A DNA stretch of 64,000 bases from Trichosphaerium sp. ATCC 40318 (taxonomy: Eukaryota; Protista; Tubulinea), in the NCBI GenBank assembly GCA_038496445.1, contig JALMLS010000579.1, positions 1-64,000 on the forward strand. Reading direction: 5' to 3'. This document shows, piece by piece, positions 3,703 to 60,725 of this stretch (position 1 is its first letter; every line of letters begins with the position of its first letter). The position numbers and the translations under genes were made by a program. Below the pieces are notes generated by a model that had not been told where the DNA came from, ran no database searches, and saw nothing but the letters and a program-made list of their open reading frames with translations.

Positions 3703-4585
3703 ATGAGTTTACTGGATATTCCACGTGAACTTCAAACTTACATTTGTACTTTCAACAAAGAAGTATTCACAAAGTTCCACAGTTTATCAAAGAGAGCTGC
3801 AACTAATACACTTTGATGAAGCGTTACAAAAGAAAGGAGTATGGATACAATGGTATAGAAGTGGTAAGGTAAGGCTTCATAAATATTGTATGAGTGGGAT
3901 ATGTAAACAATGGTATGAGAGTGGAAAACTTAAGAGGCAGTATGTATCAGTTGATGGTAAAAAAAATGGCCTTAGTGTAGAATGGTATGAAAATGGACAC
4001 CAAAAGAGTCAATGCATGTGGGTTGATAATAAACAGCACGGTGAAAGTAAGGGATGGTATGATAATGGTCAGCTTGAGGAGCAATGTATGTGGGTTGATG
4101 GTAAACAGCATGGTGAAAGTAAGGGATGGTATAAAAATGGCCAGCTAGAGGAAAAAAGCATGTGGGTTGATGATAAACAGCACGGTGAAAGTAAGGGATG
4201 GTATGATAATGGTCAGCTTGAGGAGCAATGTATGTGGGCTGATGGTAAACAGCACGGTGAAAGTAAGGGATGGTATGAAAATGGACAACTTAAGGACATT
4301 AGCTTTTGGGTTGATGGTACACAACACAGTGACAGTAAAGGATGGTATGAAAATGGGCAACTTCAGTACCACAAGTTACGGGTTTGTGACAAACAACATG
4401 GTGAAAGTAAGATATGGTATAAGAATGGACAACTAAAGTACCAGTGCATGTGGGTTGATGGTAAAAAACATGGTGAAAATAAGGGATGGTACGATAATGG
4501 ACAATTAAGGTTTCAATGCACATTTGTTGATGGTAAACAGTATGGTAAATGTAAGGAATGGTATGAAGACGGACAATGTAAGTAA
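3703..4585 (+). CDS. F-box-like N-terminus plus MORN-variant (MORN_2/YwqK-like) repeat protein, intronless
   Basis: ATG 3703 gives MSLLDIPRELQTYICTFNKEVFTKFHSLSK. A 2-nt slip near 3810 is corrected by the mirror arm. About ten 23-aa repeats WYxNGQLxxxxxWVDGKQHGExKG follow. Confidence 0.85.
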
Positions 4586-5382
4586 TAATAAAATTTGTGA
4601 TATGATTGTCAATAGAATTCCAGTTTATTTACAGCCTTAGCTTTCGTTTACAGCACTTTCTAGTGAGTGGAAGAGTATTTGAGCACAAAAACGCGGAAGG
4701 TTTCCCACATGATATCAATGATCTAGGTCATCCGTTGTGAAAGTGTTTGATGTGTAAGTCCGGTTCCCGCATTTACAACTAGCTAGACAGTTTCAACGCT
4801 CTTCTATCTTACATTTAGTAAGCCATATAAAAAGTTGTTGGTTTTGCTATTAAGTTCTTATGCTATATCAAGTCGCGCTGGCTTTTAACAGCTAAAAAAC
4901 AAGTACTTTTCTGCTTCGATAGCTCTACTTAAACTGTGGTGGTCTGACTTGTTAATTTTTGTTTGGTGTAATAAATAAAAAGGGATGTCTTTCAAGACAT
5001 GTTTTCTCAAAGGCAAAAAGTACAACGCTCTTGCCCAGCGGCCACTTTTTAAAACAACCAATATCTACCCTACTACTTCTGTTACTAATCATATCAACAG
5101 CATGCAGTTATACTCAAGCAACACTAAACCCGTCAACAATACCTTTCCTAAACCAACAACAAAAAAAAACGGTTTGCAACTTGGCATTTAAATAATATTT
5201 TATGTTAACACCATTGATATTTCCTTTACAATAATCTAATGTACAAATAATCTGGATTTAACAGAAACAAAACAAAAAGAGAAAAAGTTGCAGTGTAACA
5301 GCACTGTAACCCCCTCATTCCTTTTTTTTTTCGTTTCAATTTTTTTTCTTTCAAAAAAAAAAGCAAAACCAACAACGCCTTT

Positions 5383-8107
5383 TTATGTAGGCTTACTAAA
5401 GTTAGATTTAACTAACTCTCTCATCTTAAACACGCTCTCAATAGCAGGACAAAGATCTGCTGGACTATCATTTGCTGCTAGAAGCATAAACTGATGCTTC
5501 ATCAACTCAGCTGTTGTTGAACGATCACGTGGTTTCTTCATTAAACACTTGCTTAAAAAGTCCTAAAAAAAAATTAAATACCCACCTTAACACTTCAATG
5601 TTGTTCGTACCTTAAAGACATCTGTCCACTTTTCAGGGTGCTGAAGATTTGGTGCGCCTTTCTTACTTATCATAAGAAGCGCTTTGAGTGATGGTAACTC
5701 AATATAAGGTGGTTCACCCTTAGATAATTTATAAGCAACTTGCATCAAAAAAAAAAAAATTGACTACCTCAAGCATCTCCATAGTAAGTATCCCCGTACT
5801 CCAAATATCCACTTTCAAGCCATATTTTTTACCTCTTATGAGCTCAGGAGCCATCCAATATGGAGTACCAAGCGTTGTTTTGCGTGTGCGTTGCTTTTTT
5901 GTGAGCTGTACGGCAAAGCCTTTATACTCGTTAGCATTAAATCTAAAGTATCTCAAGACTCACCAAAATCAGCAATTTTAACATCACCCCTTCGCGATAA
6001 CAAGACATTATCAGACCTAAAGCAAGCATAAGCACTTAAGAATAGTTTTGAAATGAACGCGTAAAGCAAACGCAGCTACGCGTTTGAGAAAAAAATAAAA
6101 ACCTTGCAAAGCAAAATCCCTAGCGTACTTTATATCTCGATGTATTCTATGCATAGCATGAATATAATTCAATCCTCTAGAAAAAAAATTAACAAAGAAC
6201 ATTGAAGAGAAAAAAGATAAGAAAATTGTGAGAACGAAGGAAAAAAACAGAGCAACGCACTTCATTATGTTGAAAATAATATATCTCATTTGAACTTCAC
6301 TTAGAGGTACGCTAGCATGATACTCTATGAGTTCAGCAAGAGTACCACCATCCATATATTCCATAACAACCCATAACATATCATCAAGTACAAAGCTATT
6401 AATATATGATACAATATTTCTATGGTTACTCGTTTTCATTATATAAATCTCTGTTTTTAGCTCTTGCATATTAGCACTCTTTATAACCATTTTTTTAATA
6501 GCAACCTTAAAGTATTTGTATCAGAATAGAGCAACAAACAAGTACAAACAACAAAACTGGAAAAAAACTCGATGTGCCTCAAAATGTTATCAAACATAAA
6601 AAAGGCTTACTCTGTTGTCATTATCAAGCATATCCTCCGCTAATACAACAACTCCCATAGCCCTATATCAGATTAGAAACCATCTAGTAAAAAACTCTTA
6701 CCCTTCACCGAGACCATCATCAATAATACGGAATCGTAACCGAGGATCTTCAAACGACACTAAATCGCCTAAAAAAAAAAGTCAACTTCTTTCGAATTCT
6801 GAATCTGAGGTTGCACGTACTCAAACTGCAAGTTACTTGCGCCTCGTCTGGAAAATCTCTGTTAGAGAGATGCGCATTAGAATCTTGAGTTTGTAGAATG
6901 GACATTAGCTCCAGTTTGTTCTCTGCAATCTCGTTTTTCGAAAATCCGCTAGCTGTTAATCTTTCTGTCCAAGAATCTGGCATACCCTTTATTAAAAACG
7001 TAAGTAAATTATAGATGGAAGACAAAAAAGTTAAAGAAAGCCACTACGCGTTTTATTTTTGTGTAGTCGCTACTCGTGTGTAATCTCGTGATTTTTATAC
7101 GTACAACAAGACCATTTCCGTCGTTACTGACATGAACATGATGCATAGGCTTATACGGTTCACCTATGCTCTTTCTAGGTTTTGCTTTTTGTTTTTTCTT
7201 CTGTCTCCACTTGAACAATAATCGATCAAGGCGTCCTGTTCGCTCTTCTTTATTGCCTTCAGGCGCACAGTTAGTTTAATTTGGTTATCAATAATCAAGC
7301 AACGAAGAAAGAAAATAATTTACGGATTTTGTTTTTCTTTCCAACTCACTTTTTAGCTCTTCTAGAGAAGGTCTCTCGTCTAAAAACTGGCTGATTGCTT
7401 CTCTTGTGAGTACTTTAGAGTCAACAATGGATGTTTCAAATACGTTAACCTGTACAACCCGTTTAGAAGCGTTATATGAGTTAGCATGCGTACAGCGTTG
7501 TTTGCGCGTGGTGATTCCGATTTTCCCCTGCGAGAGCGTTTAATGCGCTTCTTCTTCTAAACAGGCTTGAGTCTGATGGTTTTAAACGTAGCACACTTGA
7601 TACCTTTTTTTTAGCGCTATCTACCCGAGTTGGCGACACTAAGCCATTTGCCATCCCAGGGACTATCTCAGGGAGTGGTGGTATTGTTGTTGGAGGTAAT
7701 GGAACAACTACCCGACGCCCAGCCTGTGGAGATGAACTGTTGTGACGATTGAACGTTGTGATCATTTCTGTTTGCCTTCGATCGCTGATTGGTAGGCGTG
7801 GCGAAATACGACTGCCAACATGTTGTGGTAAACTAATGCTTTGCTGCATTCCGTTTAAATTAGGCAGTGTTGGTCGCGCAGCTGCACTTCGCGGTGTCAA
7901 TTCTGCCGGTTGGTGTAGAATGCGGACGTAATCATAAGGGAACCACCCAGTGACTCCGTTTAGCTCTCCGCGTGCCCAACCACCACTCTTCTCCAAAAAT
8001 TTGATCAGATCTCCTTTGGCGATGGCTAATTCATTTTGACCAACCATTCTGGGCGCGTACGACTCTATTGCAACGCATTGCGTATCTTTAGCACCAGGAG
8101 AAGCCAT
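5383..8107 (-). CDS. p21-activated (PAK/STE20) kinase with N-terminal SH3 and CRIB domains, multi-exon
   Basis: SH3 (ELAIAKGD...GWARG...GWFPYDYV), Pro-rich linker, CRIB (SIGEPYKPMHHVHV), and a kinase domain with GEG-AMG, HRDIK, DFG and the STE20 signature GTPYWMAPE. Confidence 0.93.
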
Positions 8108-15492: not shown

Positions 15493-16981
15493 ATGGACAT
15501 AGCGCCTGACTTCACAACCGCCCAGGATAACAGGTAAAACAAAGTAATAAATGTATTTTAACTAAAACAATAGCGGTAGTGCTAAAACATTGTTATTGGA
15601 TCTACCAATAGAGATTTTAGCAAGTATTCTCTTGTTTACAACGAAATCACGATTTACAGCTTGTCAAACATGTCATCTCCTTTCTTCTATCATACATGAC
15701 ATCATAGGATACTATAGAGTCAGTATAACAACAAACGAACAAGCACTTGAAGTTATAAAACACAAGGGTATCATTAAACACACAAATATCCGGTTAGTTA
15801 ATGATTTACGAAACGGGTTTCCTTGTGACAGTCTTCTGGAAAAATTTAAAGGAGTTCACACAATTGACCTTCGTAAAACTAAGGTATCACGTGAAGGTGT
15901 TAAATGGCTTGCAGGAGTTCATACAATTAACCTTTATCAAACTTCTATAGATGATAAAGCAGTGAAAGCACTTGCTGGTGTTCATACTATAAACCTTGGT
16001 TGTACAAGTGTATCAGATGATGGTGTGATCGCACTCGCTGGTGTTCATTCTATAAATCTAGGAAGAGTTTCGCGTATTACGGATAAAGCAGTGATTGCAC
16101 TTGCTGGTGTTCATACTATAGACCTTCATGGTATAAACGAAGTGACAGATGAAGGGTTAAAGGCTCTTGCTGGTGTCCATACCATAAAACTTAGAAATTC
16201 TAAAGTTACAGATGAAGGTATTAAGTATCTTGCTGGGGTTCATGAAATCTCACTTTATAGATGTTCGTCAATAACAGATAAGGGTATAAAAGCACTTGCT
16301 GGTGTTCATACTATAGACCTTGGTAATACAAGTGTAACAGATGATGGTGTGATCGCACTCGCTGGTGTTCATACGATTCATTTGAATTGGACTAATGTAA
16401 CAGACAAAGGAGTTGAAGCTCTTGCTGGTGTTCATTCCATTAGTCTTCTACATACTGACGTAACTGACAAAGGTATTGAAGCTCTTGGTGGTGTTCATAC
16501 AATTCATCTCTATGGTTTAAAAGTTACAAATAAGGGCATCAAAGCTCTTGCTGGCGTTCACACCATTCATCTTCATGATTGCCATAATTTAGGTATTGAA
16601 GGAATAAAGGCTCTTAAGGGTGTCCATGAGATTAAATTTAGTAATGGTGGCATTGAAAGAACGACAAGAAAGGATGAAATTCTTGAGTACCTTTGTGATG
16701 TACACACAGTAGGCATTGAAAGTAACCAGGAATCATTTACAGATGATGGAATCAAAGCGTTAACTAATGTCAAACATCTTCATCTTGTTTATAGTGGTTT
16801 TACAAACTCAGGTTTGAAGACATTAGTTAACTTGGAACAACTTGTGTTAAATGACTGTTACAAGATTACTGGTGATTGCTTCAAGCATTTGAAATCTCTG
16901 AAAAGTATTACTGTACTGGACTGTGAAAAAATTTCAGAAGAGGCTGTCAAGTCAATGGGTATTAGATATACCTATGAGTAG
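15493..16981 (+). CDS. F-box plus leucine-rich repeat protein ('GVHTI' LRR), one short 5' intron
   Basis: ATG 15493 with intron 15534-15573 (GTAAAA...TAG) splices in frame to LLDLPIEILASILLF (F-box). About 15 repeats of 21-22 aa follow (LAGVHTIxLxxxxVTDxGIKA). Confidence 0.9.
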
Positions 16982-17309: not shown

Positions 17310-18950
17310 TTACAAGCAATCCATCTTAAAAATACAACGTTCACCATCACTTGTTGTTCCTTTGAAGTATAATTGCTTATTATAATACTGTAAAGCAAAA
17401 ATATTATCAAGCTTCTTAGTTAAACGAAGTCTCACAATATATCTTTTTGGGGTAGAAAAGAACATTTTATAAATACCTTCAGATTCATGAATAACAGTTG
17501 TACGATCATCTGACCTGCTCTCTGCTAAGCTAAAGTATAAATCACCTATATGATCAAAGGCTATACCAGTAATCCTTATATTATATCCATCAGGTATAAC
17601 AGGATTCCATAGAGTAGATACAACGCCTTTTTTGATTACACGAATAGCAAACTCAACAGCAAAAAAAAGTGTTTCTGTTCCAGGCTTCTTTGCAATGTAC
17701 CCTGGATATAGAATTTGTGATTCTTTTAATGGCCCATTTTTATTCGCTTTCTTCTCAGGATGACCTCCTAAAGGAGAAAATTAAAAAAGATGGAAACCTT
17801 GCAGAAAGAAAATCATGATTTTCTCTTTTTTCTCTTTGTGGTCGCTTATTTGTGTTTTTGAAAAAAAATCACGTGTGTTCCACGTGATGAACGAAAAAAG
17901 TATAAAAAACTATTACCTATAGTCACAACTGTTCCATCTTTGCATAATTTACGTAGACAGTGATTCCAATCATCACAAACTATGATACCGCCATCTGCAT
18001 CAAATACCATTCCAAAAGGGTAATGAAATAATGATTCAAGAGCTTTTCCGTCTTTGTAACCAATAACAGAAGGAACACCTGCTACTGTTTCTATTGTATT
18101 GTCCTTAGCGCTTATCTTACGGATAGTATGATTATAAGAGTCGCTGCAATATATGTTATCTTCATCGTCAAGTAATAAACTATGAGGACAAGTTAATACT
18201 GCTCCTTCAAGAGGACCATCATTGTAAGAATGATCTCCCATAAGATTATGAACATCTGCTTTAATCAACGGTGTTTTAGTCTTTGTTTCCAAGTTAAATG
18301 ATATAAGACTATGTCTACCAAAGTCCGTGTAAAGAAGCTAAATAATGTCAGAAAACCCTGAACGTTAAACAAAGAAGCCAAAGCCGAAATAAGACCAATT
18401 TTTTTTGTTTGTTTTTTGGTTTTTATCACAGCACGTGATTTAGGAATACGCACATGTCCTTTGGAATTGAATACAATACAAGTTGTAATACCAGTATCAG
18501 TTATAAGCAGTTCAACGTTCTTGACAACTAGTCTAGCCTAAAACCAAAATTAAACAAAACGCTATCCATCTTTTTTAAAAAAAGAACCAATTTTCTGCTT
18601 CCAGAAATAGGTTTACTGTGCGTCATTCAAGTTAATTCATGCGTCAACTTTTGTCCTAGAGGAGCGACTATTTTTTGTGGCACTTTGAGAAACATACATT
18701 CAACTTGAATGACACACATAATAAAACGTTGGGGTCGATTGTTTTTTTTGTGTTTTTTTTCTGAAAGAGGCAAGTTTTGCTTGTTGTTGGTTTAAATACG
18801 TTCCTGCATAGGTCTATGTAGAGCCATTACACTTCTGAAGCGTTTGCAGGAAGTAGTAAAGTTTCCAAGGTCTTTAAGGCTCATTTGAAGAAGTACTTCC
18901 AGAACAGCTTCAGGAGGGAGTACGTCAAACGGGCATTCGTCAGACGTTTC
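17310..18950 (-). CDS. F-box plus NHL-repeat beta-propeller protein, multi-exon, start uncertain
   Basis: Exon ~18950-18800 encodes PFDVLPPEAVLEVLLQMSLKDLGNFTTSCKRFRSV (F-box). Downstream DGPLEGAVLTCPHSL..IYCSDSYNHTIRKI..TVAG..GYKDG..FHYPFGM..DDWNHCLRKL are NHL repeats. Confidence 0.78.
18617..18718. repeat. Short inverted repeat/hairpin within an intron
   Basis: GTCATTCAAGTT (18622-18633) pairs with AACTTGAATGAC (18702-18713), extended by flanking TGTG/CACA. Confidence 0.55.
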
Positions 18951-19832
18951 TATTAGAGGTTATAATTAGTTTATTCGATAATATCAATTTAACGAGTGTT
19001 TTATCTACCAGAGAGGGTAATATATCAAATAAACGTCATTCGAGCGTTTGGTTTAATTTTTTTGCTGTTTAAATGGAATTTTCGTTTTAATTGTGTTCCA
19101 AGTGTACCTACTAGTTCCATTTGCATTTAATTCGTATAATTACGTGCTTTTTCAGCGTGTAGACTTAATCAATCTGCAAAGTTTAAGTCTTGGGTACCTC
19201 AGAAATTTGCCTAGCGTTTGTGGATCGAGATTATCGTGTACGCCATCGGACGCCAAAAAAAGTTCTTTTCTGCCACAGGTGCACATATAAGCGCTAGGTT
19301 CCGAAGATCCGGTTCTCCATCTTTAATATACGGCCCTTGTTGATTTCATTTTTTTGGTTGCACATATTTTATTCTGGCTAGGAGCTTAGCAACACATTGC
19401 TTACACCTCTAGATAACTTTGAAGAAACCGTTCGCTCAACAAAGATTTCGGACAATCACATATGCTGAATGGGCGAAGTCGTGTTAACTGCCAATTTGGT
19501 TGACAACATTTTCTAAAGTTTAAGAAATTGTGACAGCAAGGTTTTACAATTTTATTGCCTTGACCTAAATAAATCCGACACAATACAACATAGTATGTTC
19601 TTATTGTAGTATGGCTTACTCAAATTAGCAACACGGGTTATGATAAAACCGTTTAGCTAAAAACGTTGAGTCAAACTGTTACGTGAATGGTTCCTTTCGT
19701 ATTGGATACAAATATCACGTGTTTAACAGTAAAAGGTACTAATTAACCCTTACAACTATTAGAGTGTTCTCACAGCAAACAAACATAGGAACTCACATTA
19801 AAAGTCACCAAACAGACCGTCAATCCTCAAAC

Positions 19833-20981
19833 ATGAGCCTCTTAACAGCGTCCGGAGACTTGTTTAATTATATCGTTAGCATTACCGTAAAGGAAGCAAT
19901 TGCGTTCTACGAGAGTTTCCAAACACCACAGGAACCCCTACGCACGCGTGAGGATACCAGAAGAGCTTCTAAACAAGATAAACAACGAGATGAGTTAATT
20001 GAAGATTGGGTAGATTTAATACCTAAAACAGAAGACGCTTCGCAGATCACGTGTATTAAAGATATTCCTGTGGAAATCATGACGAGAATTCTACAATCTC
20101 TTTCGGCTAAAAGTAGATTGGATGCTTCTCTCACGTGTTGGCACTTCGCTCTTGTCATACACCACTACATTGGCTTTGGTAAGACTACCTTGGGAGAAGA
20201 AAAACAGTACAAACAATACGTCAAAACAAAGGAGAACAGCAAAGTCTTACCGCTCCCTTCTCAATGCGTGACGTCGAAGCTTTTGTATGACTTGTCTAAT
20301 GTTCATACTGTCAAAGTACCTTATTCTAAGGTAACTGATTCAGGGATAAAAGCTCTAGCACGTGTGCCTGTTGTAGATTTGTCGTTTTGTTTTCATATTT
20401 CTGATGAAGGTGTTTCATCTCTTTACGGCGTTGACGACTTAAATCTAGCAGGTTGCACTCAGCTATCTGATGACGCTATTATTGATCTTGGAGGTATACA
20501 TACAATCAATCTCGCTGGATGTATAAACATTACAGATAAGGGGTTTAAAGCGCTTGCTGGTGTTTATGATATCAACCTTCAAAATACAAATATTTCAGAT
20601 GAAGGCATTAAAGCTCTTTGTACAGCTCAGGTGATTGATCTAGCCAACTGCGAGTTTATAACCGATGATGGTGTATCATCCCTGTGTGATGTAGGATCGA
20701 TTAATCTAAGTCATTGCACGCAGATTACGGATGTTGGCGCTAGCGCACTTCAAAGTGCTGAACATATCAACTTATTAGGATGCCAACAAATCACAGATAA
20801 AACGATTAACTCACTCGTTTGTGTATCAATCTTGTGTGTTGGAGATTGTCCTAATATAACAAGAGAAGGACTGAAAATCTTAGGGAATGGTGTACACATT
20901 TCTTTTGATGAAATCAGTTTAGCAGGATGGAAAGACTATGTAGAACTTGTTGAATACCAATATTTTTGGCAATGGTTTTAA
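19833..20981 (+). CDS. F-box plus LRR protein, intronless
   Basis: IKDIPVEIMTRILQSLSAKSRLDASLTCWHF (F-box), then LxxVxxINLxGCxxITDxG repeats. First ATG at 19833. Confidence 0.88.
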   Translation: MSLLTASGDLFNYIVSITVKEAIAFYESFQTPQEPLRTREDTRRASKQDKQRDELIEDWVDLIPKTEDASQITCIKDIPVEIMTRILQSLSAKSRLDASLTCWHFALVIHHYIGFGKTTLGEEKQYKQYVKTKENSKVLPLPSQCVTSKLLYDLSNVHTVKVPYSKVTDSGIKALARVPVVDLSFCFHISDEGVSSLYGVDDLNLAGCTQLSDDAIIDLGGIHTINLAGCINITDKGFKALAGVYDINLQNTNISDEGIKALCTAQVIDLANCEFITDDGVSSLCDVGSINLSHCTQITDVGASALQSAEHINLLGCQQITDKTINSLVCVSILCVGDCPNITREGLKILGNGVHISFDEISLAGWKDYVELVEYQYFWQWF

Positions 20982-21552
20982 GAAACGACTTTGTGGTTTT
21001 CTAAGTCGCTAAAACAACACGCGTATAAAATTTGTGAATAAAATTAAAAGGTGTTATGTACCCAATTCCCAAATTGTTTTTGAGACATGTAAAAGCAAAG
21101 AGAAAACTGACTGGTAACAGAAGGTCAAGAACAAAACAAGTCAAACACGATTGTTTATACGTCTCGGTTTAATGTTCTACTAGGGTATATGGCACTCGTG
21201 CAAGGCAATGATGGTTTAACCAAGACAACCATATGCTATTAAGGAGCGCAGAGATCATGGATGCCGTAAACTTAAAGTGAAGGAATATTTCTTTTGAATC
21301 GCGATCTGTAAGATATTAATCAAGCTTTAGATCCGCTGACAATTGGAGTCATTGTGAGTGGGTGTACCGATTGAGGGGTTAATAGTATTATTCTATTATA
21401 GTCACGTGATAGGGCAATAGCTTTGGTTCTTAAAATTGTTTTGTTCAAAGGTTGCTGGGATAGAATATTTCACCAGAATTTAACTAAGACCAACTTTGAC
21501 GTTCGATGCTAAGGCAACGTTACAATCAAAGTCGCCAATATACTCTAACGCA

Positions 21553-22857
21553 ATGGCTAGTGTGCAATGCGATGACATACGCTCTTGTTTCGTTGAAACA
21601 ATACCAACAGAGCTCATTGTTGCTATTTTTGAGTATACTCTGGACATAGAGCGATATCCGCTTGCTCACACGTGCTGGCTGTTCTATAATATTATTCACA
21701 GCCACATTGGTTACGGTGAAATCGTTATAAGGTCTTCAGAGTCATTACAGCTTTTACTCAGCCAGAAATCGCTTTTAAACAACACTCTTATATCATTCCA
21801 AGAGTACGAGGCCACAGACGAGGAAATAAGCTCATTGGCAGGTGTTAAATATTTATCAATTTGGCAACTGCAATTGACCAATAAGTGCCTAGAGGCACTT
21901 GCTGGTATTAAGGAAATAGATATATACGGGTGTAAAAAGATTACAGATGAAGGTATTCAATTCTTGTCGGGTGTACATACAATAGATGTGAGCTATATGA
22001 GACAGTTGACTGATAAGTCATTAGAAGCTATTTCGGGCGCTTACAAAGTAGAAATTTCTGGTTGTAATCGTATCACTGATGATGGATTAAAATCACTTGC
22101 TGGAGTTCATTATATAGATTTACAAGGTTGTAAAGTTACTGATGTTGGTGTGAAATCACTTGCTGGAGCTCACACAATAATATTGTCTGGTTGTCAAAGT
22201 ATTGATGGATCTTGTTTTGAACACTTGGCGAAAGCTAAAAATAGAAAAGGCAAAATATGTCTGCACATGATTGATATTGGTTGTTGTGAGGGTGTTAATT
22301 TCGATCATGTGAAACAATTATCTGGTGTACATGAAATTAGTTTACGATCCTTGTCCATCAAAGATGAAGATATAATACCTCTTGTTGGTGTAAACGTACT
22401 TGACTTGAATAATTGTAACAACGTAACTGTAGATTCAATAGCATCTTTTTCTGGTATTCACAGCATCGATTTAAAAATGTTATTCATACAAGACTCATGG
22501 CTTGAATATTTATCAGGAGTACACACGATAGTCTTAAGCAATTGCAAAGGTTTTACTGATAATGGATTGAGATCACTTGCAGGAGTTCATACTATTTACT
22601 TATCTTGTTGCAGTGATGTCACAGATGAAGGTGTCATTCACCTAGCTGGTGCACATACAATATGGTTGCGTGGATGTTCTAAGATAACAGATAGAGGTGT
22701 TAAAGCTCTTGCAGGTGTTCAAGCAATAAGTCTGAAAAGCTGTTCTCTTGTAACAGATGAAGGGATATCCGCTCTTAAAGGTGCTTTTAGAATAATTATA
22801 GAGGGTACAAAGTGTACAAAAGATGCTGTCATTGCTTTGGGTGCACAATTTTATTGA
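21553..22857 (+). CDS. F-box plus LRR protein, intronless
   Basis: VETIPTELIVAIFEYTLDIERYPLAHTCWLF (F-box), then about 14 LAGVHTIxLxGCxxITDxG repeats. Confidence 0.9.
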   Translation: MASVQCDDIRSCFVETIPTELIVAIFEYTLDIERYPLAHTCWLFYNIIHSHIGYGEIVIRSSESLQLLLSQKSLLNNTLISFQEYEATDEEISSLAGVKYLSIWQLQLTNKCLEALAGIKEIDIYGCKKITDEGIQFLSGVHTIDVSYMRQLTDKSLEAISGAYKVEISGCNRITDDGLKSLAGVHYIDLQGCKVTDVGVKSLAGAHTIILSGCQSIDGSCFEHLAKAKNRKGKICLHMIDIGCCEGVNFDHVKQLSGVHEISLRSLSIKDEDIIPLVGVNVLDLNNCNNVTVDSIASFSGIHSIDLKMLFIQDSWLEYLSGVHTIVLSNCKGFTDNGLRSLAGVHTIYLSCCSDVTDEGVIHLAGAHTIWLRGCSKITDRGVKALAGVQAISLKSCSLVTDEGISALKGAFRIIIEGTKCTKDAVIALGAQFY

Positions 22858-23409
22858 TTCATTGTGCATCTATTTCACGAGTAACAATACCACGGTCCCA
22901 ATGTACTCATTCATTTTAAATAAAACTAAGTTTTATTCTAAATGCTGTTCCATTGTTTGCAAGTAAATCTAATAGCATGCCAGTCATTTAAATGTAAAGC
23001 TTAGACTAGGTTGTTGTAAAACGAGTTGAAGCAGGGTGTCACAACTGACTATTATTTGTAGTCTGCCAGTTGCTGTAAACGACCTTTTCAAAGGCCGCTC
23101 TTGATTATCAACTATCACGTGCATTTTTGCAATATTACTTATAGAGCTACATTGGAACATATCAGTGGATTGCTTGTGTACTCTAACGGGTCGCCTGTTC
23201 AAGCCAACGAGAAATAATAGCTCTTAGGGCGTTGAGAAACCTGCTTTCGCTAACTTATGAAACCAGTTCTCCTAATTAAGGTAACAGTCATCGTCATTAC
23301 ACAAGTCTTTGACGTCAAAAGATTCGGATCTTAAACGGTTTCTTCCGTTAAATTATATAAACAACAAGAGCTACGTTTAGCTACGCTTTGACTAGTAACT
23401 ACAGAAGCG

Positions 23410-26120: not shown

Positions 26121-29100
26121 TTATGAAGCTACTACTTTCTTTGACCAATTTGGAAAATACCAAAACGCTTTTGAAATCCATAAGAAAGTAGTGTAAGTAG
26201 CATAACCCCACATTATAGGAGGAATCCAAATAGTAAATTTCTCAAATACTTCAAGTTCTCCATTATTTGTTTCGCTCTCATAAGACTCCTTGCGATCCTT
26301 TACAATTAAGCTATAAAGCCAATAATTTGCAAAAGCGAATAAACTTGATTTTCTAGTAACACGTGAGCAATAGATTGAAGAATGTTGTAATTGTGAACAA
26401 TAATAAATAAAAAAAAGGTGTACTTTGTAATTCTCTCAAAAGAGCCTTGCAGTATATCAAATGCCATGTATGGACATTTCAAGGTATATAAATGTTGTAT
26501 AGTACGCCAATAAAGATCTACAGCATAACCAAATCCCTTGAACTTTGGATCTAGAAACACCATGGTGTTAGTTCTGAATAACTTATCGAAAAACTCAAAA
26601 ATCCATTTATAAAAATGCACGTACCAACCCACGTTGTCACCACTTCGTAAGTGTCTTTAGCGCTATAATCCTAGATAAAATGTAAGCAACTTGATATTAA
26701 CAGGCCTTCTAAAAAAGAAGCTACAAGAAAGGAAAAAGATACTGTTTTTTTCTAAGAAGTAAGTTTTGTATCAGTACTCCGAGAGAATATGCTGAAATAC
26801 ATGAAGTATTCAGTAACTCAGAATCCTTGCTCTTTTTATCTATATAAATAACATATCCAGGGAACACATCGTGGTCAAAATGACCTAATTGCTCTAAAAA
26901 TAATAAGTTAGAAAACTGACTCTTGTTTTTTCTTTCAAATACCATCTTCTTGACCAATTCTCACTTGCTCGCCCTTCGGTTTTATAAAGTTTATAAACGT
27001 TTGTAGAGTTTCTTCTCCAGGCCTTCCTACGGATAGAGTATTAGTGACCAATTATGTATTCAAAAGAGAGCGTACCTCCTCTATCTCGCCATACTCTGTC
27101 TTCATTAGTAAATACCCACTTAATAAGTCTATCATTGCTGAGAGGATCCATATCTGTAAATGGAACAACATGATGTTGCTCAAGTAATATCTCTTTTAAT
27201 TTCTTACGGACTTTCTTAATATACTTTGCTTTAGGATGTTTCTCACCTTCAAAAAGAACACAAGGTCAGCAAAACAAGTTGAAGGCAAAAAAGCGAAAAA
27301 CCTCAATTCCGTCCAATTGTTCTAATCCTACTTTTTTTACTAACACGCAGAAATATGTCATCACATTTCACTTCGCTGTAAAAACAGTATTTCCACATGA
27401 GAAAAAAAAAGGAATTTGAACATACTGGACAAGTACCCATTTGAAACAAAGCAACAAAGTGAGAGGCTGATTTCAAAAAAAAACCCACTTACTTGTTTCT
27501 GAAACAATAATCTTCTCCCTTAGTTCCAAGTGCTTATTCAGCTCTACAATATAAAGTAAGTACTAACACCCTCTTGATTTTAATGTATCAAAAAAATACC
27601 ATTAAATTGTGCCTTGTTGTTACTCAGCAATCGAGAAATATTTTCCTTCTCATAGCAAAGACCAATAGTCTTTGTAATTACATTCAAAATAGCATTGACC
27701 AATTCTGTTTGTTCCTCAACAGTAATCTTAGTTCTAGTCCCACCTAACCATACAATTGTAAGAATGTTGTGTTGCACGTGAGGTGTGATGAAATTATTTG
27801 GTTTTCTTTAGATGGGGATGTACCACGTCTATCCCTGTTTCTTCTGTTCCATTGATCGAGTGAAAACCCGACTGCAATTATATTTGGTTCATCCAATCCA
27901 GTTTCGAAGTAGTGATTCACATACTGAGATATACCTCGTCCAAAAGCAGGTATAAACGCTTAACAACGAATAAGCAACACTTAAGATATAAAAAAAACTA
28001 AACAAGCGATAAATATTCTCCGTCATGGCAGGCACATACTGCGCCAAACTAAGCTAATAGCAATCCTATCTATTTTTATGGAAACGGAAACAAAACAAGG
28101 GCGTTCTAAACTACCAAAGCACAGCAAACAGCTTTGTTTGAAAAGTTTTCAGAAAAACCCAAAATAAGAGTGTAACTTACGTTTCAACTTATCGTTTCTT
28201 GTGAGTTGTTTCATAATATCAGATAATATAGTTCCAGGTAAATCCTTTACACGTTTTGGTGCTTTTGATTTTTTCTTGATCGTAGGAACTTTCATAAGCT
28301 CTGTGCTTGATTTCAACAAAGTTCTACGTGTTACACTTTCTCTCACTGTTATTTTCGGTAAGACTATTCTAGATACGTTCTGTTCATCTATAATGATATC
28401 ACCAGCCTTAATCTTTTCAATTTTAAAATCATAGTAACTCTCAACACCAGCAACTTCGAAAAAGTTGTCCCTAGGAAAAACAATCAACTTTCTCAAAAAA
28501 TTCTCAATTAGTTTCAAACGTACGTCATTGTTAACATGCTTCCAGATAGCTGAGGCTTTATGATATCCTCAAGAACACGGAAAACTTTATCAGAAGGAAT
28601 ACCTTTAGGAACAATAATGCATGGAACATGACCAGAAGCAACAAGAGTTTTGAAAAAAGAAAGCCAAACCAAAGAAGTATCAAAAGGATGACCATTAGCA
28701 TATATCTTATAAATATAGAGTCCTTGATCTGTATATACAGCTTCTAGGTTCTCAATCTCGATACCTGGAGAACCAGGTTTGTCCTTGCTTTCTTCAAAAA
28801 CACTTATAGTTGTAACGTTACATTTCAAAGCATTTTCAAGAACTTTTTCGCAATGATCACCTAAGCGCTCTATGTAAATCACCAATTCCGGCGTACTATT
28901 ATAATCGTACCAGTAGGAGCATAACACCCAGCTATTTGCTTTCCACATGTTCCAGCAGTGCCCCAGAACGAGTTTTGTAATCTGCACCAATAACGTTTTA
29001 TTTGTACTGGAGCATTTGCTTCCTTCCATTGTTCCTCTTCGTACTTTGTCTCCAATTCTCGTTCCTTAGGTATAATATCAGTATACAATCACATAATGCT

Positions 29101-34599: not shown

Positions 34600-35642
34600 A
34601 ATACGTTAGTTAAGTATCTATAAAAAGCATATAAAGTGTTTTGTAGCTTTTTCAAAGGGAAAATAATGATATTGAAAGATCTCATGATAATGTTGCTGAA
34701 ATTGTCTCTTTTTGGTTGGATGTTGAAACATTCTCTTTGAAGCAACCTACCATGACCGGAAGGTGTCTCAACTGCGGTTATCTCTCCAATAGATTCTCTA
34801 TTCATAGAACACTGATTATCTCCGCCACTTTGTTTGCCATCAATGTAAAGACACTGTGATTGAAGTTGACCATTGTTGTAAAACTGAATGAATTTTCCGT
34901 CTTTTTTATTGTCAACCCAAAAGCTGTGTTCTTTTAATTGGCCATTATCATACCACCCTTTATATTCGCCATTCTTTTTATCATTTACCCAGATACATTG
35001 TTCTTTAAGCTGTCCGTTTTCATACCATTCTTTACCTTGACCATTAAGTTTATCATCAACCAATATAGAAAATGATTGAAGTTGACCATTTTCATACCAT
35101 TCTCTGTTATGAAACTTTTGCTGTCCATGGCCATTATCAACTATCTTCCTATGTACCTGAAGTTGTCCGTCTTCATACCATATTTTAATTTCACCATTTT
35201 GTTCATCATTGACCCACATACATTGTTCCTCAAGTTGTCCACTCTGATACCACATTTTAGTTTCACCATTTTGTTTATCATCAATCCACATGCTATGTTC
35301 TTGAAGTTGACCATCCTCATACCACGCTTTATATTCACCGTTTTGTTTGCCATTAGCCCACATGCACTTCTCCCTAATTTGTCCATCCTCATACCACCCT
35401 TTATATTCACCATCTTGTTTACCATCAACCCACATACATTGTTCTTCAAGCTGCCCGTTTTCATACCATTTCTTGTACTCACCGTTGTGTTTACCATTGA
35501 CTATTGTACATTGGACACGAAGTTGTCCATTACTATACCATGTTTTATGTTGATCATTACGTTTACCTTTCACTATCATGCACTGTATTTTTCTCTTTGT
35601 CGCGCAGTAATTTTGCTCCACAGTTTTTTTTTCTGGCTGCAA
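34518..35642 (-). CDS. MORN-variant repeat protein
   Basis: About ten 23-aa WYENGQLxxxxxWVxxKxNGExK repeats (35560-34830). The 5' end resembles a splice acceptor (TTTTTTGCAG), and the non-repeat tail may not be real. Confidence 0.82.
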   Translation of the reverse strand: MQPEKKTVEQNYCATKRKIQCMIVKGKRNDQHKTWYSNGQLRVQCTIVNGKHNGEYKKWYENGQLEEQCMWVDGKQDGEYKGWYEDGQIREKCMWANGKQNGEYKAWYEDGQLQEHSMWIDDKQNGETKMWYQSGQLEEQCMWVNDEQNGEIKIWYEDGQLQVHRKIVDNGHGQQKFHNREWYENGQLQSFSILVDDKLNGQGKEWYENGQLKEQCIWVNDKKNGEYKGWYDNGQLKEHSFWVDNKKDGKFIQFYNNGQLQSQCLYIDGKQSGGDNQCSMNRESIGEITAVETPSGHGRLLQRECFNIQPKRDNFSNIIMRSFNIIIFPLKKLQNTLYAFYRYLTNVFHISLSYWNGANATNRFFLMKKKKPNK

Positions 35643-36299: not shown

Positions 36300-36331
36300 T
36301 TAATAAACTAATATTCACCCTTCACAATGTT

Positions 36332-36570: not shown

Positions 36571-37545
36571 ATGGCAACAAATGAACGTGAAACGATAAAC
36601 AACGTCCATTGTTGGTTTCAAAATGTTCCACCGGAGACCTTAACGCATATTCTTCGCTGTTTAAACAGACCACAACGTATTAAAGCTTCCACAGTCTCTC
36701 ATGCGTTTAATAACATTGTTCGCTGTAATATTGGCTTCGATTACATCCGTTTGCGCAATTCATCCGATTGTCGTGTTCTAAAAGGCAGCCCTTTGCTCAA
36801 AAACACTGAGATAGCATGTCGTAGTTTAACAATGTCAGATACTGAGTTGAGTTACCTTTCTGGCGTTCGTTCTATTGACCTACAGCATGCCAGTATCACA
36901 TCAACTATGAATAAAGGTGATTGGATGAAAGCCTTAAGTGGTGTTCATTCAATAAATCTTGGTCATATTCAACTCCCTGAAAAAGATCTTGATGCATTGG
37001 TTGGCGTTCACACTATAAATCTAAAATTTACTAATGTATCTGATCATGGTATACTCTCATTAGTACATGGAGGAAAGCACACTGTACACACTATAAATTT
37101 GCATTGGGCAAAGATAACAAATGTTTCTTTGGTTGCACTTACAGGTGTACACACTATTAATATCCGTGGTTGCTTCAATATTACTGAAGAAGGAATAAAG
37201 GCACTCAAAGATGCACATGAAATTAGAATCAGTCGTCCTAAACAATCATGGCTTAAACATCTTGGTAATGTACACACTCTTCATATTTTTAGCGGAGAAT
37301 GTCTGACAGATGGGCTCAACTCATTGGTTAATGTCAAATGTTTGCTGTTGAGTAGGTGTGGGAGTATAACAGACTCAGGGTTCAAACGTTTGATCAATCT
37401 TGAACACTTGGTACTTAATTACTGTCATGCAATCACAAATGATGCCTTACAATACATGAAAGCTCTTAAAAGTATCAGAATAAATGGGACTTGTAAGATA
37501 ACTAAAGCATTTGTAGATACAACTAGTATACATTGGGAACAATAA
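36571..37545 (+). CDS. F-box plus LRR protein, intronless
   Basis: FQNVPPETLTHILRCLNRPQRIKASTVSHAF (F-box) and LxGVHTINL repeats. The C-terminal cap LINLEHLVLNYC resembles that of the 15493 gene. Confidence 0.88.
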   Translation: MATNERETINNVHCWFQNVPPETLTHILRCLNRPQRIKASTVSHAFNNIVRCNIGFDYIRLRNSSDCRVLKGSPLLKNTEIACRSLTMSDTELSYLSGVRSIDLQHASITSTMNKGDWMKALSGVHSINLGHIQLPEKDLDALVGVHTINLKFTNVSDHGILSLVHGGKHTVHTINLHWAKITNVSLVALTGVHTINIRGCFNITEEGIKALKDAHEIRISRPKQSWLKHLGNVHTLHIFSGECLTDGLNSLVNVKCLLLSRCGSITDSGFKRLINLEHLVLNYCHAITNDALQYMKALKSIRINGTCKITKAFVDTTSIHWEQ

Positions 37546-48448: not shown

Positions 48449-48462
48449 ATAATAGTATTTTC

Positions 48463-55600: not shown

Positions 55601-58137
55601 TCACTTACGATTTACAGTGCATTTGTAGTTACAATAGCCAGTGTGTCCCAGTGTTGAGTGCAAACGTATAAACGTTCCATATTCAAACTTGCACAAGACA
55701 TCAAAAATTACATTCCTTGAAGTTAATTCTTCTATTAAAATCAAAAACGTCATTTTTTTACCATTTCTTAAATGGGCGAGGTTAGCACTAAGAAGCGACA
55801 ACAACACTACAACGCACTGATTCTTTTTGAATTCTCCTATAGAAGGTTAGTACTATACAGACATAAATAAACGTACAGTATAAACCCTTCTAGGTAAACT
55901 TCACCATCTACACAAAAGTTCCTTTCAGTAGTTTCAATGCCAAGCGAACATGACTTTGCATACAATTGGGACTCAGAACGTAAAGTGTCAATTGATACAA
56001 TATGACCCCATCGTTCGTGCCAATACAAGTCTTCAGGTTTGAAGCATCGTAATAGGTACTGCGCAAAGAATAGGGGAAGTTGTGAAGCGTATTTACGTGC
56101 CAGATCAGGCAATGATGAAGCATCTATAATAGACTTAGCTACGAGTTGGAAACACACATTATACTCACGAGCAATGAGCCATAAGTCACAAGATATCAGA
56201 CCTATCTTTTTCTGGTTTCTTTCTATAATTGTAAATACATTGCGAGGAACTGGCATTGGTCCGTCAGTCACTGATATTAATTTTGTAACTGAGCCTATCT
56301 GTTTTACGATGCAATCTACAATCGATTTCCGATCAACAACCGATGGTAGTAGATAACTACATAATGCTACTGAGTCAGCAGTACCAACCTTACAACCAAG
56401 AAAGACTCGTTCTTGATCATCTTCTTTGATAAACTATTTTTAGTGAGTACACGTGCTTCTTATTTAAAATCGCTCGTACGTGACCTAGGCGAACGAGTAC
56501 ACCTCTGATCATCTCCACAGAAGTAAGTTTTATTATTTCTGTTAGGGAAGAGGTTGATAGATACTCAAGAACTAACTGAAGGGAATCTACTGTTTCACCT
56601 TCTAGTAGAACAAGTTGGTAAGTGTTATCATCATTCTTGAATCTTGTGAACTGGTTTTTTAAATATCTAAAAATATCAGTGTGGTTTGTTTAAGCTTTTG
56701 GTTCCATGAACTTTGTGGTTGATGACAGCATCGAAGAACGCTCCTAGTGATTGCTGTCCAAAATGACTTACTCGCAGTTTGTTCCTAATATGTATCTTGA
56801 TCCTTTTACTTTAAGAACAGGATCTGAATTGAAAAAGATGACGAAAGTAACATCACATAAGGCAGGATCTCCACCTTTCAAAAATTTCTCCTCAACATCA
56901 ACATCACCTGACCTAAACGAATGATTAGAGCCCTATAGTGGTGACGCAGATATACAACATACATAAGCAGGTCCATTTGTTGGTCAATAGTTGGTTTGAA
57001 TATAACAATGTCATTTCTGGGATTACCTTGTTTGTGCCCTTGCATTACTACCCATACGAACTCTAGATTGCCTTTGCACACGTGATTTGATTTGCTGCTT
57101 TCAGCAACACAGCGAGCCAACCCAAACATGTTGAGAATTACATTACAAGTCAGTGTGCTGCAACGCTTTAGTGCGTTTAATGAGATGCTGTAACCCAAAT
57201 TATTAACATATGACACAAGCGCTAGCAAGTGAAACCCTTTTATACTAGGCGTCTGTTTCTTCTACAACATAGTCAAGGTACTGAGCCCTTTGATAAAAAG
57301 ACGTACTAGTGATTTTCCAAGAGAGTTATATTCCTTGATGTTGATATTCATGTCTTTGATTAGATTCACTCTGGTTACTTCAGTTTCGAGGTATTTGACA
57401 GGTTCAAAGGTAACTTCTGATACTGGGAAAGATCTTGGAGATTCTTGTACAAGTTGGCTGTATGCTGCGACAACAGATGAATCTTGAATGACTAAACTCT
57501 CTTTATCATTTGGCTGTTGATGTTCCAAAGCACGGAATAGTATCCTACAAACTTAATTGAGATACACATGTCTTAATCGTGATAGGAAATGTTCGTACTT
57601 GGATAATACAGTTACAACTATATCACGTGCATATTCGAAGAACCCAGGAAGTGTACTAATAATATGTTCTTGAGTTGCAAGTTGCTGAAGTCCCAAGTTT
57701 ATCCAACGTTCAGGAGTAGTTGAGCAGCTAGAGAATATATCTTGACAACATAAAGTACTCACAAGTGATTTTGTGGTTTCGCTCCTAAGGTTTATATATC
57801 TCTTAGAGTGAGCGAATAGAGCCAAGTCGTTCTTGTTGTTGACGGCCTTTGGTACAAATGGCAGAGCAACCTTTTTTTCTCTTGAAAGGCGCTTTAGATC
57901 TTCTATTTGGTTTTTCAAGTACTCTCGCCACCCGAAATTGTCGTCTACACGTTGTTTACACAACGTTGATAACGAAGAGAAGTAAATAAGGCTTTTTGGA
58001 GGTAAGCGGGATAGGATCGCATTAAAACAACGTGTTGGAGCGTTTCGAATAAATTTGTGTACATAGAAACCCTGTGTGCGTCTAATGGCATGTTATATAA
58101 GTATACCATATAACTACTTACTTTTATGCTTTTCCAT
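55601..58137 (-). CDS. F-box protein with unknown C-terminal region, multi-exon, apparent homopolymer frameshifts
   Basis: ATG 58137 and a GTAAGT intron. Adding one base to a T run and one to an A run gives LFETLQHVVFNAILSRLPPKSLIYFSSLSTLCKQRVDD. Downstream exons at 57553, 57262, 56878, 55837 and 55601. Confidence 0.6.
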
Positions 58138-58417
58138 ACTCAATTAAATGATGCAACGGTATGAACTCTCTTAGAGAAACAACAGTCAACATTTGTCGCT
58201 GACTTTAAGTGAGGACTTGCTATGCTTGTGGTCATTAAGGCTACTCATTCGCCGGTAAGGATGGAATTATCTGCAATTTATACATCCGTCACATTGCAGC
58301 GTCAACTTGAATAATTCCAAGGCATATATAAATTACAAGGTTCAGTTATCTATTAGCAGTTCACGACATCCGCCAATGTTCAAACTACTCTTCATTTTTC
58401 GTTTCTTGTGAAACTTC

Positions 58418-59401
58418 TTACAATTCATTTGATGCACCTTCAGCAAAATGAACATTCTGTTTGACTTGTCCATTTTCATACCACTCTTTGCAGTGGCCCT
58501 TTCTTGTACCGTTAACATACATAGCTTGTATCTGTGGTTGTCCATTCCAATACCACTTTTTGAACTCACCATTTTCTGTACCATTAACATACATAGCTTG
58601 TAACTTTAGTTGCCCATTATCATACCACTGTTTGAAATCACCATTTTCTATGCCATTAACAAACAAACCTAAAGTTTTGGATTGTCCATTCTCATGCCAC
58701 TCTTTGTACTTACCATGCAACTTACCGTCAACATACATACTTTGCAACTCTAGCTGTCCATTTTCGTACCATTGCTTAGTCTCTCCATTCCGTTCACCTT
58801 CAATGTACATTCTTTTAACATGAGGTTGACCATTCTCGTGCCACTGTCTGAACTCATTGTTTTCTTTGCCTTCAACATACATAACTTGTATTGCTAGTTG
58901 TCCATTCTCATGCCACTGTTTGAACTCACCATTTTTTATGCCATTAAAAAACATAGCTTGTAGCATTAATTGACCATTCGCATACCATGCCTTGCACTCT
59001 CCGTTTTCTTTGCCGTCAATAAATATAGCTTGCAATGCTAGTTGTCCATTCTCATGCCACTCTTTAGCTTCACCATGTTGTTTATCATCAATATACACAG
59101 TTTTGAGCCTGAGTTGCCTGTTTTGATGCCACGCTTTCTTGTTTCCATTCGCCTTACCGTCACGCATCATAACCTGGAGTTTTACAGAGCCATTATCGTA
59201 CCATCTCTTCCAGATTCCTTTTTTTTCAAGTTTGGTATTGAAATGTGTGTTGACAGCAGCAGTTTTAGAGAGTGAATGGAAATTGGTAAACGTTTCTTGG
59301 TTGAATGTACACAAATAGCGTTGTATATCATTTGGTATATGTAGTAGAGTATAAGACGTAACATTAGGGCAATTTTGACCGAGATTTGGTCTTTTTTCCA
59401 T
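58418..59401 (-). CDS. F-box-like N-terminus plus MORN-variant repeat protein, intronless
   Basis: LLHIPNDIQRYLCTFNQETFTNFHSLSK, then about 11 WxENGQLxxQxMYxxGxENGExK repeats. Paralogous to 3703-4585. Confidence 0.9.
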   Translation of the reverse strand: MEKRPNLGQNCPNVTSYTLLHIPNDIQRYLCTFNQETFTNFHSLSKTAAVNTHFNTKLEKKGIWKRWYDNGSVKLQVMMRDGKANGNKKAWHQNRQLRLKTVYIDDKQHGEAKEWHENGQLALQAIFIDGKENGECKAWYANGQLMLQAMFFNGIKNGEFKQWHENGQLAIQVMYVEGKENNEFRQWHENGQPHVKRMYIEGERNGETKQWYENGQLELQSMYVDGKLHGKYKEWHENGQSKTLGLFVNGIENGDFKQWYDNGQLKLQAMYVNGTENGEFKKWYWNGQPQIQAMYVNGTRKGHCKEWYENGQVKQNVHFAEGASNEL

Positions 59402-59785
59402 TTTGTGGATATAGAGCTTACTAAAGAAATGATCTGTTGCTTATCGCTACTGTCAGTGAGTTCTTTATCAAACTGTAAACTAGTTTGCCTTTCAAGTAAA
59501 GTCAAAAGGGGTGAAATAACACTATGTTATTGTAACGTTAAGCATACTCTTAAAGGCCACTCTCGATTTGTAGCACGCACGTGACTTTCTACTCTTGTGC
59601 CTACGTAAAGTACTTCCTAACGATACACTACTAATATAGCTTGCAGAGTTGCATGAGGGCTACCTATGTTCATATGAAACCGTCTCGAAAAATCAGTTAT
59701 CTAACACAAACTAACTGTTTCACGTCAAATACTTTCTTCGAATACCACGAAACGTGCAACACTAACACCTCTTGTTGCAACAATA

Positions 59786-60725
59786 ATGGCCCGTACTAAG
59801 CAAATAGCTCGTAGATCAACTGATTCAGCCTCAGGTAATGAAAAACCAAAGCGGCTCTTTGAGAAAAAGCGAACCTTTGCTTGTGTCGATGCTAGCGCTA
59901 TTTCTATGTGTCCAACCGAAATATGGATAGAAATAATGTCAAACCTGCTTTGTAAAAGCCTCAGGACCTTATGTTTCGTTAATAAGACGGTTTACGCTAT
60001 TGTATACGCAAACAAGGCATTGTCAAAGAAAATCAAACAAGGTACACCAAAAGGAAAACCCATTCTTGGAACTTAAGTTAACATAACAACAGGAATTTTG
60101 AACTGGGAACACGTTGTGCTCGATGTAGTCAATTACAATGGTCCACCTAATCCAGGCATACCTTTTATTGAACCATTGTCAATATCTGGAAGACTGATTA
60201 AGGACCACAACAAAGACTTGTCAACGCATAAGGCAAATTCGTGTCAGAAATACCTGAGAACGATAGAACATTCAAAAAAAGAATACAGTTGTAGATGTTC
60301 CACCAGACAAACATGACGGTATTATCCGTTGGGAACCTTTATGGCCTACAGGTGATAATGACATGTTTATGGGTTCTTTGCAGCAGTCCGTTTGGGAGTC
60401 AAACAGTGGTAACATCCTGTATCTTTCAATATCAAAATCAGGATGTGATGGTGCTATTGGATTGGATACAAAAGACGACTGTGTTGTAGTTGGAACAGGA
60501 AATAGTCACCCATACATACGTTCTTGTGACTTTAGTTACAGAAGTTCTAATGGTAGTGACCCTCATTTTTGGTCACGAGCAACTAGAAATTCTGACCCTG
60601 TGTTTAAAACAATTGCTATGTATCCTGTTCTAGATGCCATTGTTGTACTTGAAGAACTTAAGCTCAACTTCCAACGCTCATCAAAAAAATGGCTATCACT
60701 AGCTGATGTTGAATTAGGAAAATAA
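59786..60725 (+). CDS. F-box protein with histone H3-tail-like N-terminus
   Basis: MARTKQIARRST, then SMCPTEIWIEIMSNLLCKSLRTLCFVNKTVY (F-box). A GTACAC..CAG intron (~60042-60092) splices in frame. One frame change near 60234-60280 is either a GC-AG intron or an A-run error. Stop at 60725. Confidence 0.8.

Follow-up and report, generated by a model that had tools for sequence, protein, structure and literature searches.

Trichosphaerium sp. ATCC 40318 was initially annotated as carrying about ten F-box-like genes with varying C-terminal modules in the first 64 kb of one contig (JALMLS010000579.1, here contig C21), which raises the question of whether this stretch of DNA is a specialized recognition locus or a sample of something larger. 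The whole stretch of 64,000 nucleotides, hereafter the window, belongs to an assembly of 70,278,838 bases in 642 contigs, and its character is eukaryotic, with a GC content of 34-39%, short coding pieces and introns. Our answer is that the window is probably a local cluster within several very large, lineage-specific Trichosphaerium F-box families. The initial view of the locus as something special was not borne out, because the two main families, F-box genes with leucine-rich repeats (LRRs) and genes with a conserved head before MORN repeats, are spread genome-wide and form equal or denser clusters elsewhere. Part of that genome-wide expansion has already been published, and the locus is an ordinary cluster within it.

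The F-box content of the window was assessed with the Pfam models PF00646 (F-box, curated cut-off 20.5 bits) and PF12937 (F-box-like), spliced candidates being scored by individual exon. Nine of the ten motifs noted initially hold. Seven have Pfam or paralogue support, namely four F-box-LRR genes, an exon linked to NHL repeats, the gene at 57556-58092 and a gene with a histone H3 tail-like start, and the other two, which are the heads of MORN_2 genes, are recovered by a widened profile and AlphaFold modeling. Comparison with hidden Markov models (HMMs) and structures therefore keeps most of the motifs; the one that falls away, at ~28250, has no significant match. The claim that F-box genes make up more than a third of the local genes agrees with the count of ~9 among ~25, that is, close to a third. 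The modules found beside the F-box heads are cysteine-containing LRRs, MORN_2 repeats, NHL repeats, parts with no known domain and an H3 tail-like N-terminus. By Pfam F-box score, the genes at 19764, 36571, 18795-18959 and 57556-58092 reach the cut-off, and those at 15590 (the gene starting at 15493), 21496 and 59786 lie below it at 18.6-20.2 bits. The coordinates are collected in Table 1.

Table 1. Features of the window discussed in the text, in order of position
Feature	Coordinates	Strand	Position of F-box, head or motif	Evidence
Perfect inverted duplication	22..6998			Arms 22-2764 and 4256-6998, 100% complementary (repeat search)
MORN_2 gene with conserved head	3667..4585	+		MORN_2 132 bits; no Pfam F-box; head HMM match split across two frames
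F-box-LRR gene	15493..16981	+	~15593-15700	LRR_6 69.8, F-box-like 20.2, F-box 19.2 bits; head HMM E 7e-22
F-box exon and NHL-repeat exons	17700..18950	-	~18800-18950	F-box on 18795-18959, 32.3 bits; NHL on 17846-18292, 39.4 bits
F-box-LRR gene	19764..20981	+	~20061-20165	F-box-like 24.5, F-box 21.6 (both over cut-off), LRR_6 47.9 bits; head HMM E 8e-24
F-box-LRR gene	21496..22857	+	~21595-21705	F-box-like 19.6, LRR_6 61.3 bits; head HMM E 2e-22
Probable F-box relic	22941..23060	-	22941-23000	Pfam F-box 16 bits, E 0.012, on the 20-residue piece
DLPGTILSDIMKQL motif at exon end	28185..28250	-		GTAAGT donor at ~28180
MORN_2 gene, third	34518..35642	-		MORN_2 125 bits; no Pfam F-box
F-box-LRR gene, SPLLKNT subfamily	36571..37545	+	SPLLKNT motif at 36787	F-box 25.4 bits (over cut-off); LRR_6 20.4 bits, with LRR_8 and LRR_4
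F-box exon, C-terminal part without known domain	57556..58092	-	~57928-58029	Pfam F-box 20.5 bits, exactly the cut-off
MORN_2 gene with conserved head	58418..59401	-	Head, residues 15-74, ~59180-59340	MORN_2 134 bits; no Pfam F-box
H3-tail-like F-box gene	59786..60725	+	~59903-60004	Pfam F-box 18.6 bits (59786-60076), below the 20.5 cut-off

The four F-box-LRR genes exhibit the clearest architecture. In each of them the LRRs lie C-terminal of the F-box in the same open reading frame (ORF), which is the layout of the FBXL class. The heads of this family follow the consensus LP(P/T)E(I/T)LT.IL..L..k.R..as.vs..Fn.IIr.nIGF and align with the strongest canonical F-boxes of the genome at an hhalign probability of 97% (E 1e-10); the strongest genome-wide Pfam F-box matches within long ORFs are themselves members of this family. 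Most copies contain the linker C..LKGSPLLKNT, and the repeat unit, LAGVHTIDL..C..ITDEGIKA, is a cysteine-containing LRR of the FBXL type. The gene at 15493 has a first exon of 41 nt (15493-15533, with its ATG at 15493) and a second exon from 15574, joined in frame across a 40-nt GT-AG intron (15534-15573) whose splice sites were read from the sequence, and its F-box is followed by ~14 cysteine-containing LRRs. The gene at 36571 is a single exon with an ATG start and has two paralogues at 82% identity and more than 120 related loci. Pairwise identity among the four genes is only 29-43%, so they are paralogues of long standing rather than a recent tandem array. As a separate observation, an F-box-LRR subfamily found on three contigs (C1:319169, C475:17355 and C232:19957) carries ~13 near-identical 24-residue repeats (LAGVHTIYLNNTSVTDEGVKA), and its copies are 90-98% identical across these contigs, suggesting very recent duplication or uncollapsed haplotypes.

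These genes resemble FBXL proteins such as Skp2, FBXL2/5/17, yeast Grr1 and plant TIR1/COI1, in that an N-terminal F-box directly precedes cysteine-containing LRRs with repeats of ~24-26 residues and the C..ITD.G...L pattern (LRR_6), and in that Skp1 and cullin partners are encoded in the Trichosphaerium genome. There are also differences. The Trichosphaerium family has its own conserved linker, IGF..I.L....C..LKGSPLLKNT, between the F-box and the repeats, and its copies, most of them single-exon, number in the hundreds within the genome of a single unicellular organism. Its nearest relatives are MMETSP transcripts at 35-42% identity.

Three further genes extend the range of modules. The F-box exon at 18795-18959 (31.6 bits in the genome-wide scan) lies on the same strand as a set of NHL exons (17846-18255 onward) located 544 nt downstream, and a candidate GT-AG intron read from the sequence (18799-18256) would link the two in frame, which is consistent with one predicted F-box-NHL gene. 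For the gene at 57556-58092, it is the stop-to-stop piece that was scored, as an ORF begun at an internal TTG misses the F-box. This gene has six paralogues, four of them within 17 kb on contig C208 and one with a 37.9-bit Pfam F-box; it probably continues in more exons down to ~55600, and a Pfam scan of the ORFs downstream of the exon gave no match. The third gene begins with MARTKQIARRST (59786-59830), a near-match to the histone H3 tail, followed by the F-box. Its later ORFs (60098-60316 and 60363-60725) gave no match in a Pfam scan, and its one paralogue (C95:151646-151906, 77% identity) keeps the H3 tail-like N-terminus.

The MORN_2 genes pose a different problem. Three genes in the window carry tandem MORN_2 (PF07661) repeats, 8-9 in each and all over the cut-off. 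Two of them begin with a conserved head, and in the third, at 34518-35642(-), the head HMM found no head within the ORF or upstream. The consensus LLDLP.DIQRYLCTFN.ETF.KFH.LSKRAA.NTHYN was derived for this head, which is matched in all 150 scored genomic loci (E below 1e-17). We consider it likely that the head is a divergent F-box that is invisible to Pfam. The competing explanation is that it is an unrelated small helical domain that merely shares an LPxE/D motif, in which case the MORN_2 genes would not be SCF (Skp1-cullin-F-box) adaptors. Several results speak for this explanation and against ours. In 20 Trichosphaerium heads Pfam detected no F-box, apart from one weak F-box-like_2 match (E 0.04), and none of 20 remote relatives scanned had a Pfam F-box. 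A shallow alignment of the head scored only 1.3% in hhalign against the F-boxes of the genome, and a first AlphaFold model, built from 25 close paralogues (mean predicted local distance difference test score, pLDDT, 68) and dominated by one long second helix, had no F-box neighbors. In addition, the structural Z-scores discussed below are low (2-3), as expected for ~45 residues and within the chance range for small helical domains. Among the other searches, a word search with the head gave no match, and in a PDB profile search the head alone matched nothing and the widened alignment matched only MORN-like repeats.

What shifts the balance is the addition of distant sequences. A profile search of 1.84 billion representatives yielded 22 remote relatives, nearly all of them with the head followed by MORN_2, and their heads (LL.LP.E(L/I)Q..I..LD.EVYLKWPLLSK..A) are much nearer to the F-box pattern. 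Twelve of these relatives were looked up and proved to be mostly MMETSP transcripts, the rest being short metagenome contigs. With the alignment widened in this way, the hhalign probability rises to 52-55% (E 1.2e-4) over 43-44 columns, which span the F-box from end to end and in register. AlphaFold, run again on 37 sequences, gives a model (pLDDT 75) with helices at residues 24-30, 35-44 and 46-52, directly after the LP motif (P23). The sole Foldseek match of this model is an LRR-F-box plant ligase (E 6.5, root-mean-square deviation 2.6 A, 39 columns). Of 48,161 chains compared by VIA-align, 19 reached Z >= 2, and 15 of these 19, including the top 11, are F-box domains in which the F-box segment is the part that aligns. 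These neighbors (Z 2.1-3.0) include Cdc4, FBXO31, FBXL17, beta-TrCP, FBH1, COI1 and Fbw7, together with FBXO3, Fbl10, FBXL5, cyclin F, AnkB and Skp2. Such an enrichment among the neighbors of a predicted model would be hard to reach by chance, and we accordingly regard an unrelated helical domain as unlikely.

How far do these families extend beyond the window? Their sizes were estimated from strict back-translated DNA motif counts with reversed-pattern controls and are lower bounds. The F-box-LRR motif SPLLK(N/H)T occurs at at least 285 genomic sites, compared with 5 for its reversed control, and the MORN-head motif LSK.AA..TH at at least 194, compared with 1. The two sub-motifs together correspond to ~480 or more genes in a genome with 27,369 predicted transcripts. 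The protein encoded at 36571 matched all 123 scored regions, and the 150 matches listed for it all have E below 1e-24. In the genome-wide Pfam scans, the best 150 of 1,398 F-box candidates and the best 150 of 1,809 F-box-like candidates are all over the cut-off, the weakest at 28-31 bits. Only the NHL-linked exon represents the window among these best 150; because the other F-boxes of the window, at 19-25 bits, fall outside them, the true number of F-boxes must be much above 150. Clusters are also common elsewhere, with eight SPLLKNT sites in 112 kb on contig C61, four LRR-family genes in 36 kb on C211 and three in 21 kb on C385.

Some observations weigh against the preferred reading. The 70 kb that follow the window contain no LRR-family member and one to three MORN-head pieces, and with ~9 F-box genes in its 64 kb the window exceeds several-fold every genome average that could be bounded, so that the cluster may be locally special after all. 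Three of the four LRR genes (two by the scores given above) and the H3-tail-like gene are listed as just under the Pfam cut-off, and an exact look-up of two window proteins in a protein collection gave no match. Overall, the window is a hot spot by this measure, though not a singular one.

Copy numbers are also affected by the state of the assembly. Identical Skp1 matches occur at C88:17040-17308 and C430:17197-17465, at near-equal offsets, and similar paired matches link C385 with C497, C81 with C273 and C287 with C331. The assembly thus seems to keep duplicate haplotigs, with raw copy counts somewhat inflated. One MORN_2 gene of the window calls for particular caution. The gene at 3667-4585 is the center of an inverted duplication of ~2.7 kb per arm at the very start of contig C21, and a palindrome of this kind is what a read folded back on itself at the end of a contig typically produces. 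Its center matches the first part of contigs C95 and C617 at 99.5% identity, and a PAK-like kinase gene at 530-1276 is doubled as well, its mirror copy lying at 5729-6490. The palindrome is probably a fold-back assembly artifact with redundant contig ends. Compared with the 99.5% identical copies on C95 and C617, the gene lacks 2 bp at ~3811, a deletion that breaks the frame between head and MORN repeats, and the gene is best regarded as a redundant copy prone to error.

The genome further encodes the machinery with which such receptors would work. Skp1 is found at ~3-4 loci, among them C137:79701-79844, and cullins at ~6 loci, so the SCF scaffold exists and is itself not expanded. The view of these genes as modular receptors, an F-box head followed by varying C-terminal modules with an SCF core of Skp1 and cullins encoded in the same genome, is supported as far as architecture is concerned. 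By analogy with solved SCF complexes, the N-terminal F-box (~45 residues) would dock on Skp1 and hence on a cullin-RING ubiquitin ligase, and the variable C-terminal module, be it an FBXL-type LRR, MORN_2, NHL or uncharacterized domain, would hold the substrate. For the genes considered here, the docking on Skp1, the role in ubiquitin ligation and any given substrate are putative. The families probably grew through dispersed as well as local duplication. Because most copies are under purifying selection, it is most likely that they work as ordinary SCF substrate receptors.

This last point was addressed through the ratio of nonsynonymous to synonymous substitution rates (dN/dS), calculated by the Nei-Gojobori method as domain-wide averages for 12 paralogue pairs, 9 of which were divergent enough. 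For these 9 pairs, dN/dS is 0.11-0.32 in the F-box and 0.21-0.51 in the LRRs, apart from one pair with 0.84 in the LRRs and 1.0 in the linker. As the ratios are below 1 and lower in the F-box than in the LRRs, both parts are constrained, the repeats somewhat less so. A pathogen-driven arsenal would be expected to have its substrate domain under positive selection when compared with the F-box, and this was not seen: with LRR values of 0.21-0.84, no pair exceeds 1, and these pairwise averages give no sign of domain-wide diversifying selection.

The same values bear on the proposal that the genes form a dedicated cell-autonomous defense, in which diversified modules would bind viral or endosymbiont proteins for degradation, as has been proposed for nematodes and plants. 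The great size of these lineage-specific expansions and the variability of their substrate modules might suggest such a role, as might the single pair with elevated LRR and linker ratios and the many giant-virus-like genes carried by this amoeba (PMC10521059). However, most LRR values lie at 0.2-0.5, Pfam scans returned no immune-type domain among the window matches, and the locus is not distinct from the remaining family members. Nothing in the window speaks directly for or against dedicated defense, a speculative idea that we consider very unlikely, and ordinary SCF receptors are the preferred reading.

Expansion on this scale has precedents. In Caenorhabditis and in plants, F-box superfamilies have expanded to hundreds of clustered members in which the F-box is conserved and the substrate module varies. 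Trichosphaerium resembles them in its lineage-specific expansion to hundreds, its local clusters and its variable substrate module, but it pairs the F-box with LRR_6 and MORN_2 where those lineages use FBA/FTH or kelch, and its substrate domain showed no positive selection in a crude pairwise test. A second parallel is offered by Legionella AnkB and other pathogen F-box effectors, in which a minimal F-box is fused to a repeat domain, AnkB itself being among the structural neighbors of the MORN head. Effectors of the AnkB type, however, are secreted bacterial proteins with ankyrin repeats, whereas the genes of the window are host genes.

The closest parallel, and the one with a published interpretation, concerns giant viruses. 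Tekle et al. (2023; PMC10521059) reported giant-virus best hits for 1,568 gene models, among which F-box and MORN were the commonest domains, and read this enrichment as giant-virus gene transfer. On such a reading, the F-box and MORN genes would have been gained by lateral transfer, or would be remnants of integrated viruses, and would then have multiplied. Their list names "F-box domain protein, Indivirus ILV1" at least 128 times and includes "MORN repeat protein, Pacmanvirus A23" as well. In marseilleviruses, F-box and MORN count among the largest gene families, and both are present in pandoraviruses (PMC8208085, PMC6418002; also PMC5753266); the likeness extends to Klosneuvirinae and Pacmanvirus, F-box and MORN being among the largest paralogous families of these viruses too. 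Furthermore, the ESM Atlas clusters nearest to the MORN head are of giant-virus origin and combine MORN_2 with a Pfam F-box in 10-19% of their members, although, with a score of 0.89 that does not reach the level required, this is a lead only.

Beyond this lead, no viral link emerged for the genes of the window. The proteins encoded at 36571 and 15590 have their best relatives among eukaryotic MMETSP transcripts (35-42% identity); short metagenome contigs come next, and then bacterial LRR proteins, several from Planctomycetes or Verrucomicrobia, with no virus named. The relatives of the MORN head that were looked up are likewise MMETSP transcripts or metagenome contigs. Scans of IMG/VR with the MORN head and the 36571 protein returned no relative, so that neither there nor among named protein matches does a viral relative of the window genes appear, and no viral hallmark gene was seen among the window ORFs scanned. 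GC content is even across the window. The gene at 15493 has a spliceosomal intron, and the neighbors have a housekeeping character, the window also containing genes for ribosomal L11, SH3, Zn2Cys6, kinase and ricin lectin proteins. In addition, the best-hit method of the paper leaves the direction of transfer, which might be from host to virus, unaddressed. We accordingly judge a giant-virus origin of these families to be distinctly unlikely and retain lineage-specific expansion of host F-box families as the preferred reading. In a more far-reaching picture, the Trichosphaerium F-box superfamily would be among the largest of single-celled eukaryotes (well over 500 members, ~200 or more of them MORN_2 genes with a Pfam-invisible F-box), host receptors and giant-virus look-alikes, in which the same architectures have multiplied, would compete for Skp1, and clusters such as this one would be birthplaces of new copies. 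We mention this picture tentatively and regard it as doubtful.

These results refine the published enrichment for "F-box and MORN" by resolving it into two or more coherent families, each of which numbers hundreds of members. One is of FBXL type and has a conserved linker of its own, and another consists of MORN_2 genes with a probable cryptic F-box head. The most useful new point is this probable cryptic F-box, which heads ~200 or more MORN_2 genes. If the MORN head binds Skp1, several hundred genes annotated as "MORN repeat" would need re-annotation as ubiquitin-ligase adaptors, possibly along with many giant-virus MORN proteins, and the claim of a giant-virus origin would then become testable by proper trees instead of best hits. 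The value of the locus is that of a sample of a larger genome pattern, the locus itself being ordinary for Trichosphaerium.

Several minor F-box-like motifs complete the inventory of the window. The motif at ~28250 lies at an exon end (...VKDLPGTILSDIMKQLTRNDKLK, followed by GTAAGT) and has just the first half of the F-box pattern; no Pfam match was found at E <= 5, and the species head HMM gave a non-significant E of 0.25. The motif lies close to where a long gene with no known domains (~28150-32900) has its 3' end. A 30-nt micro-exon that would complete the F-box pattern there was considered, and no supporting evidence was found. Just after the gene at 21496, the segment 22941-23060 reads CDTLLQLVLQQ, then HLNDWHAIRFTCKQWNSI in another frame and then a stop, and judging from these features it is probably a pseudogene fragment, a decayed eleventh F-box copy. 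Weak matches of the species HMM at 27906, 38629 and 41359 were dropped, as they have no Pfam support.

Finally, three neighboring genes deserve mention. A fungal-type Zn(2)-Cys(6) binuclear cluster domain (30 bits) is encoded at 23410-23814(+) in an amoebozoan gene, and a cysteine-rich, secreted-looking protein with a threonine/proline-rich tail and a 26-bit YHYH match is encoded at 38276-39239(-). An ORF at 54871-55215(+) encodes a ricin-type beta-trefoil lectin (RicinB_lectin_2, 58 bits) and may, judging by the number of the model, be the RICIN-domain gene TRSP36656, a candidate for bacterial transfer (PMC10521059).

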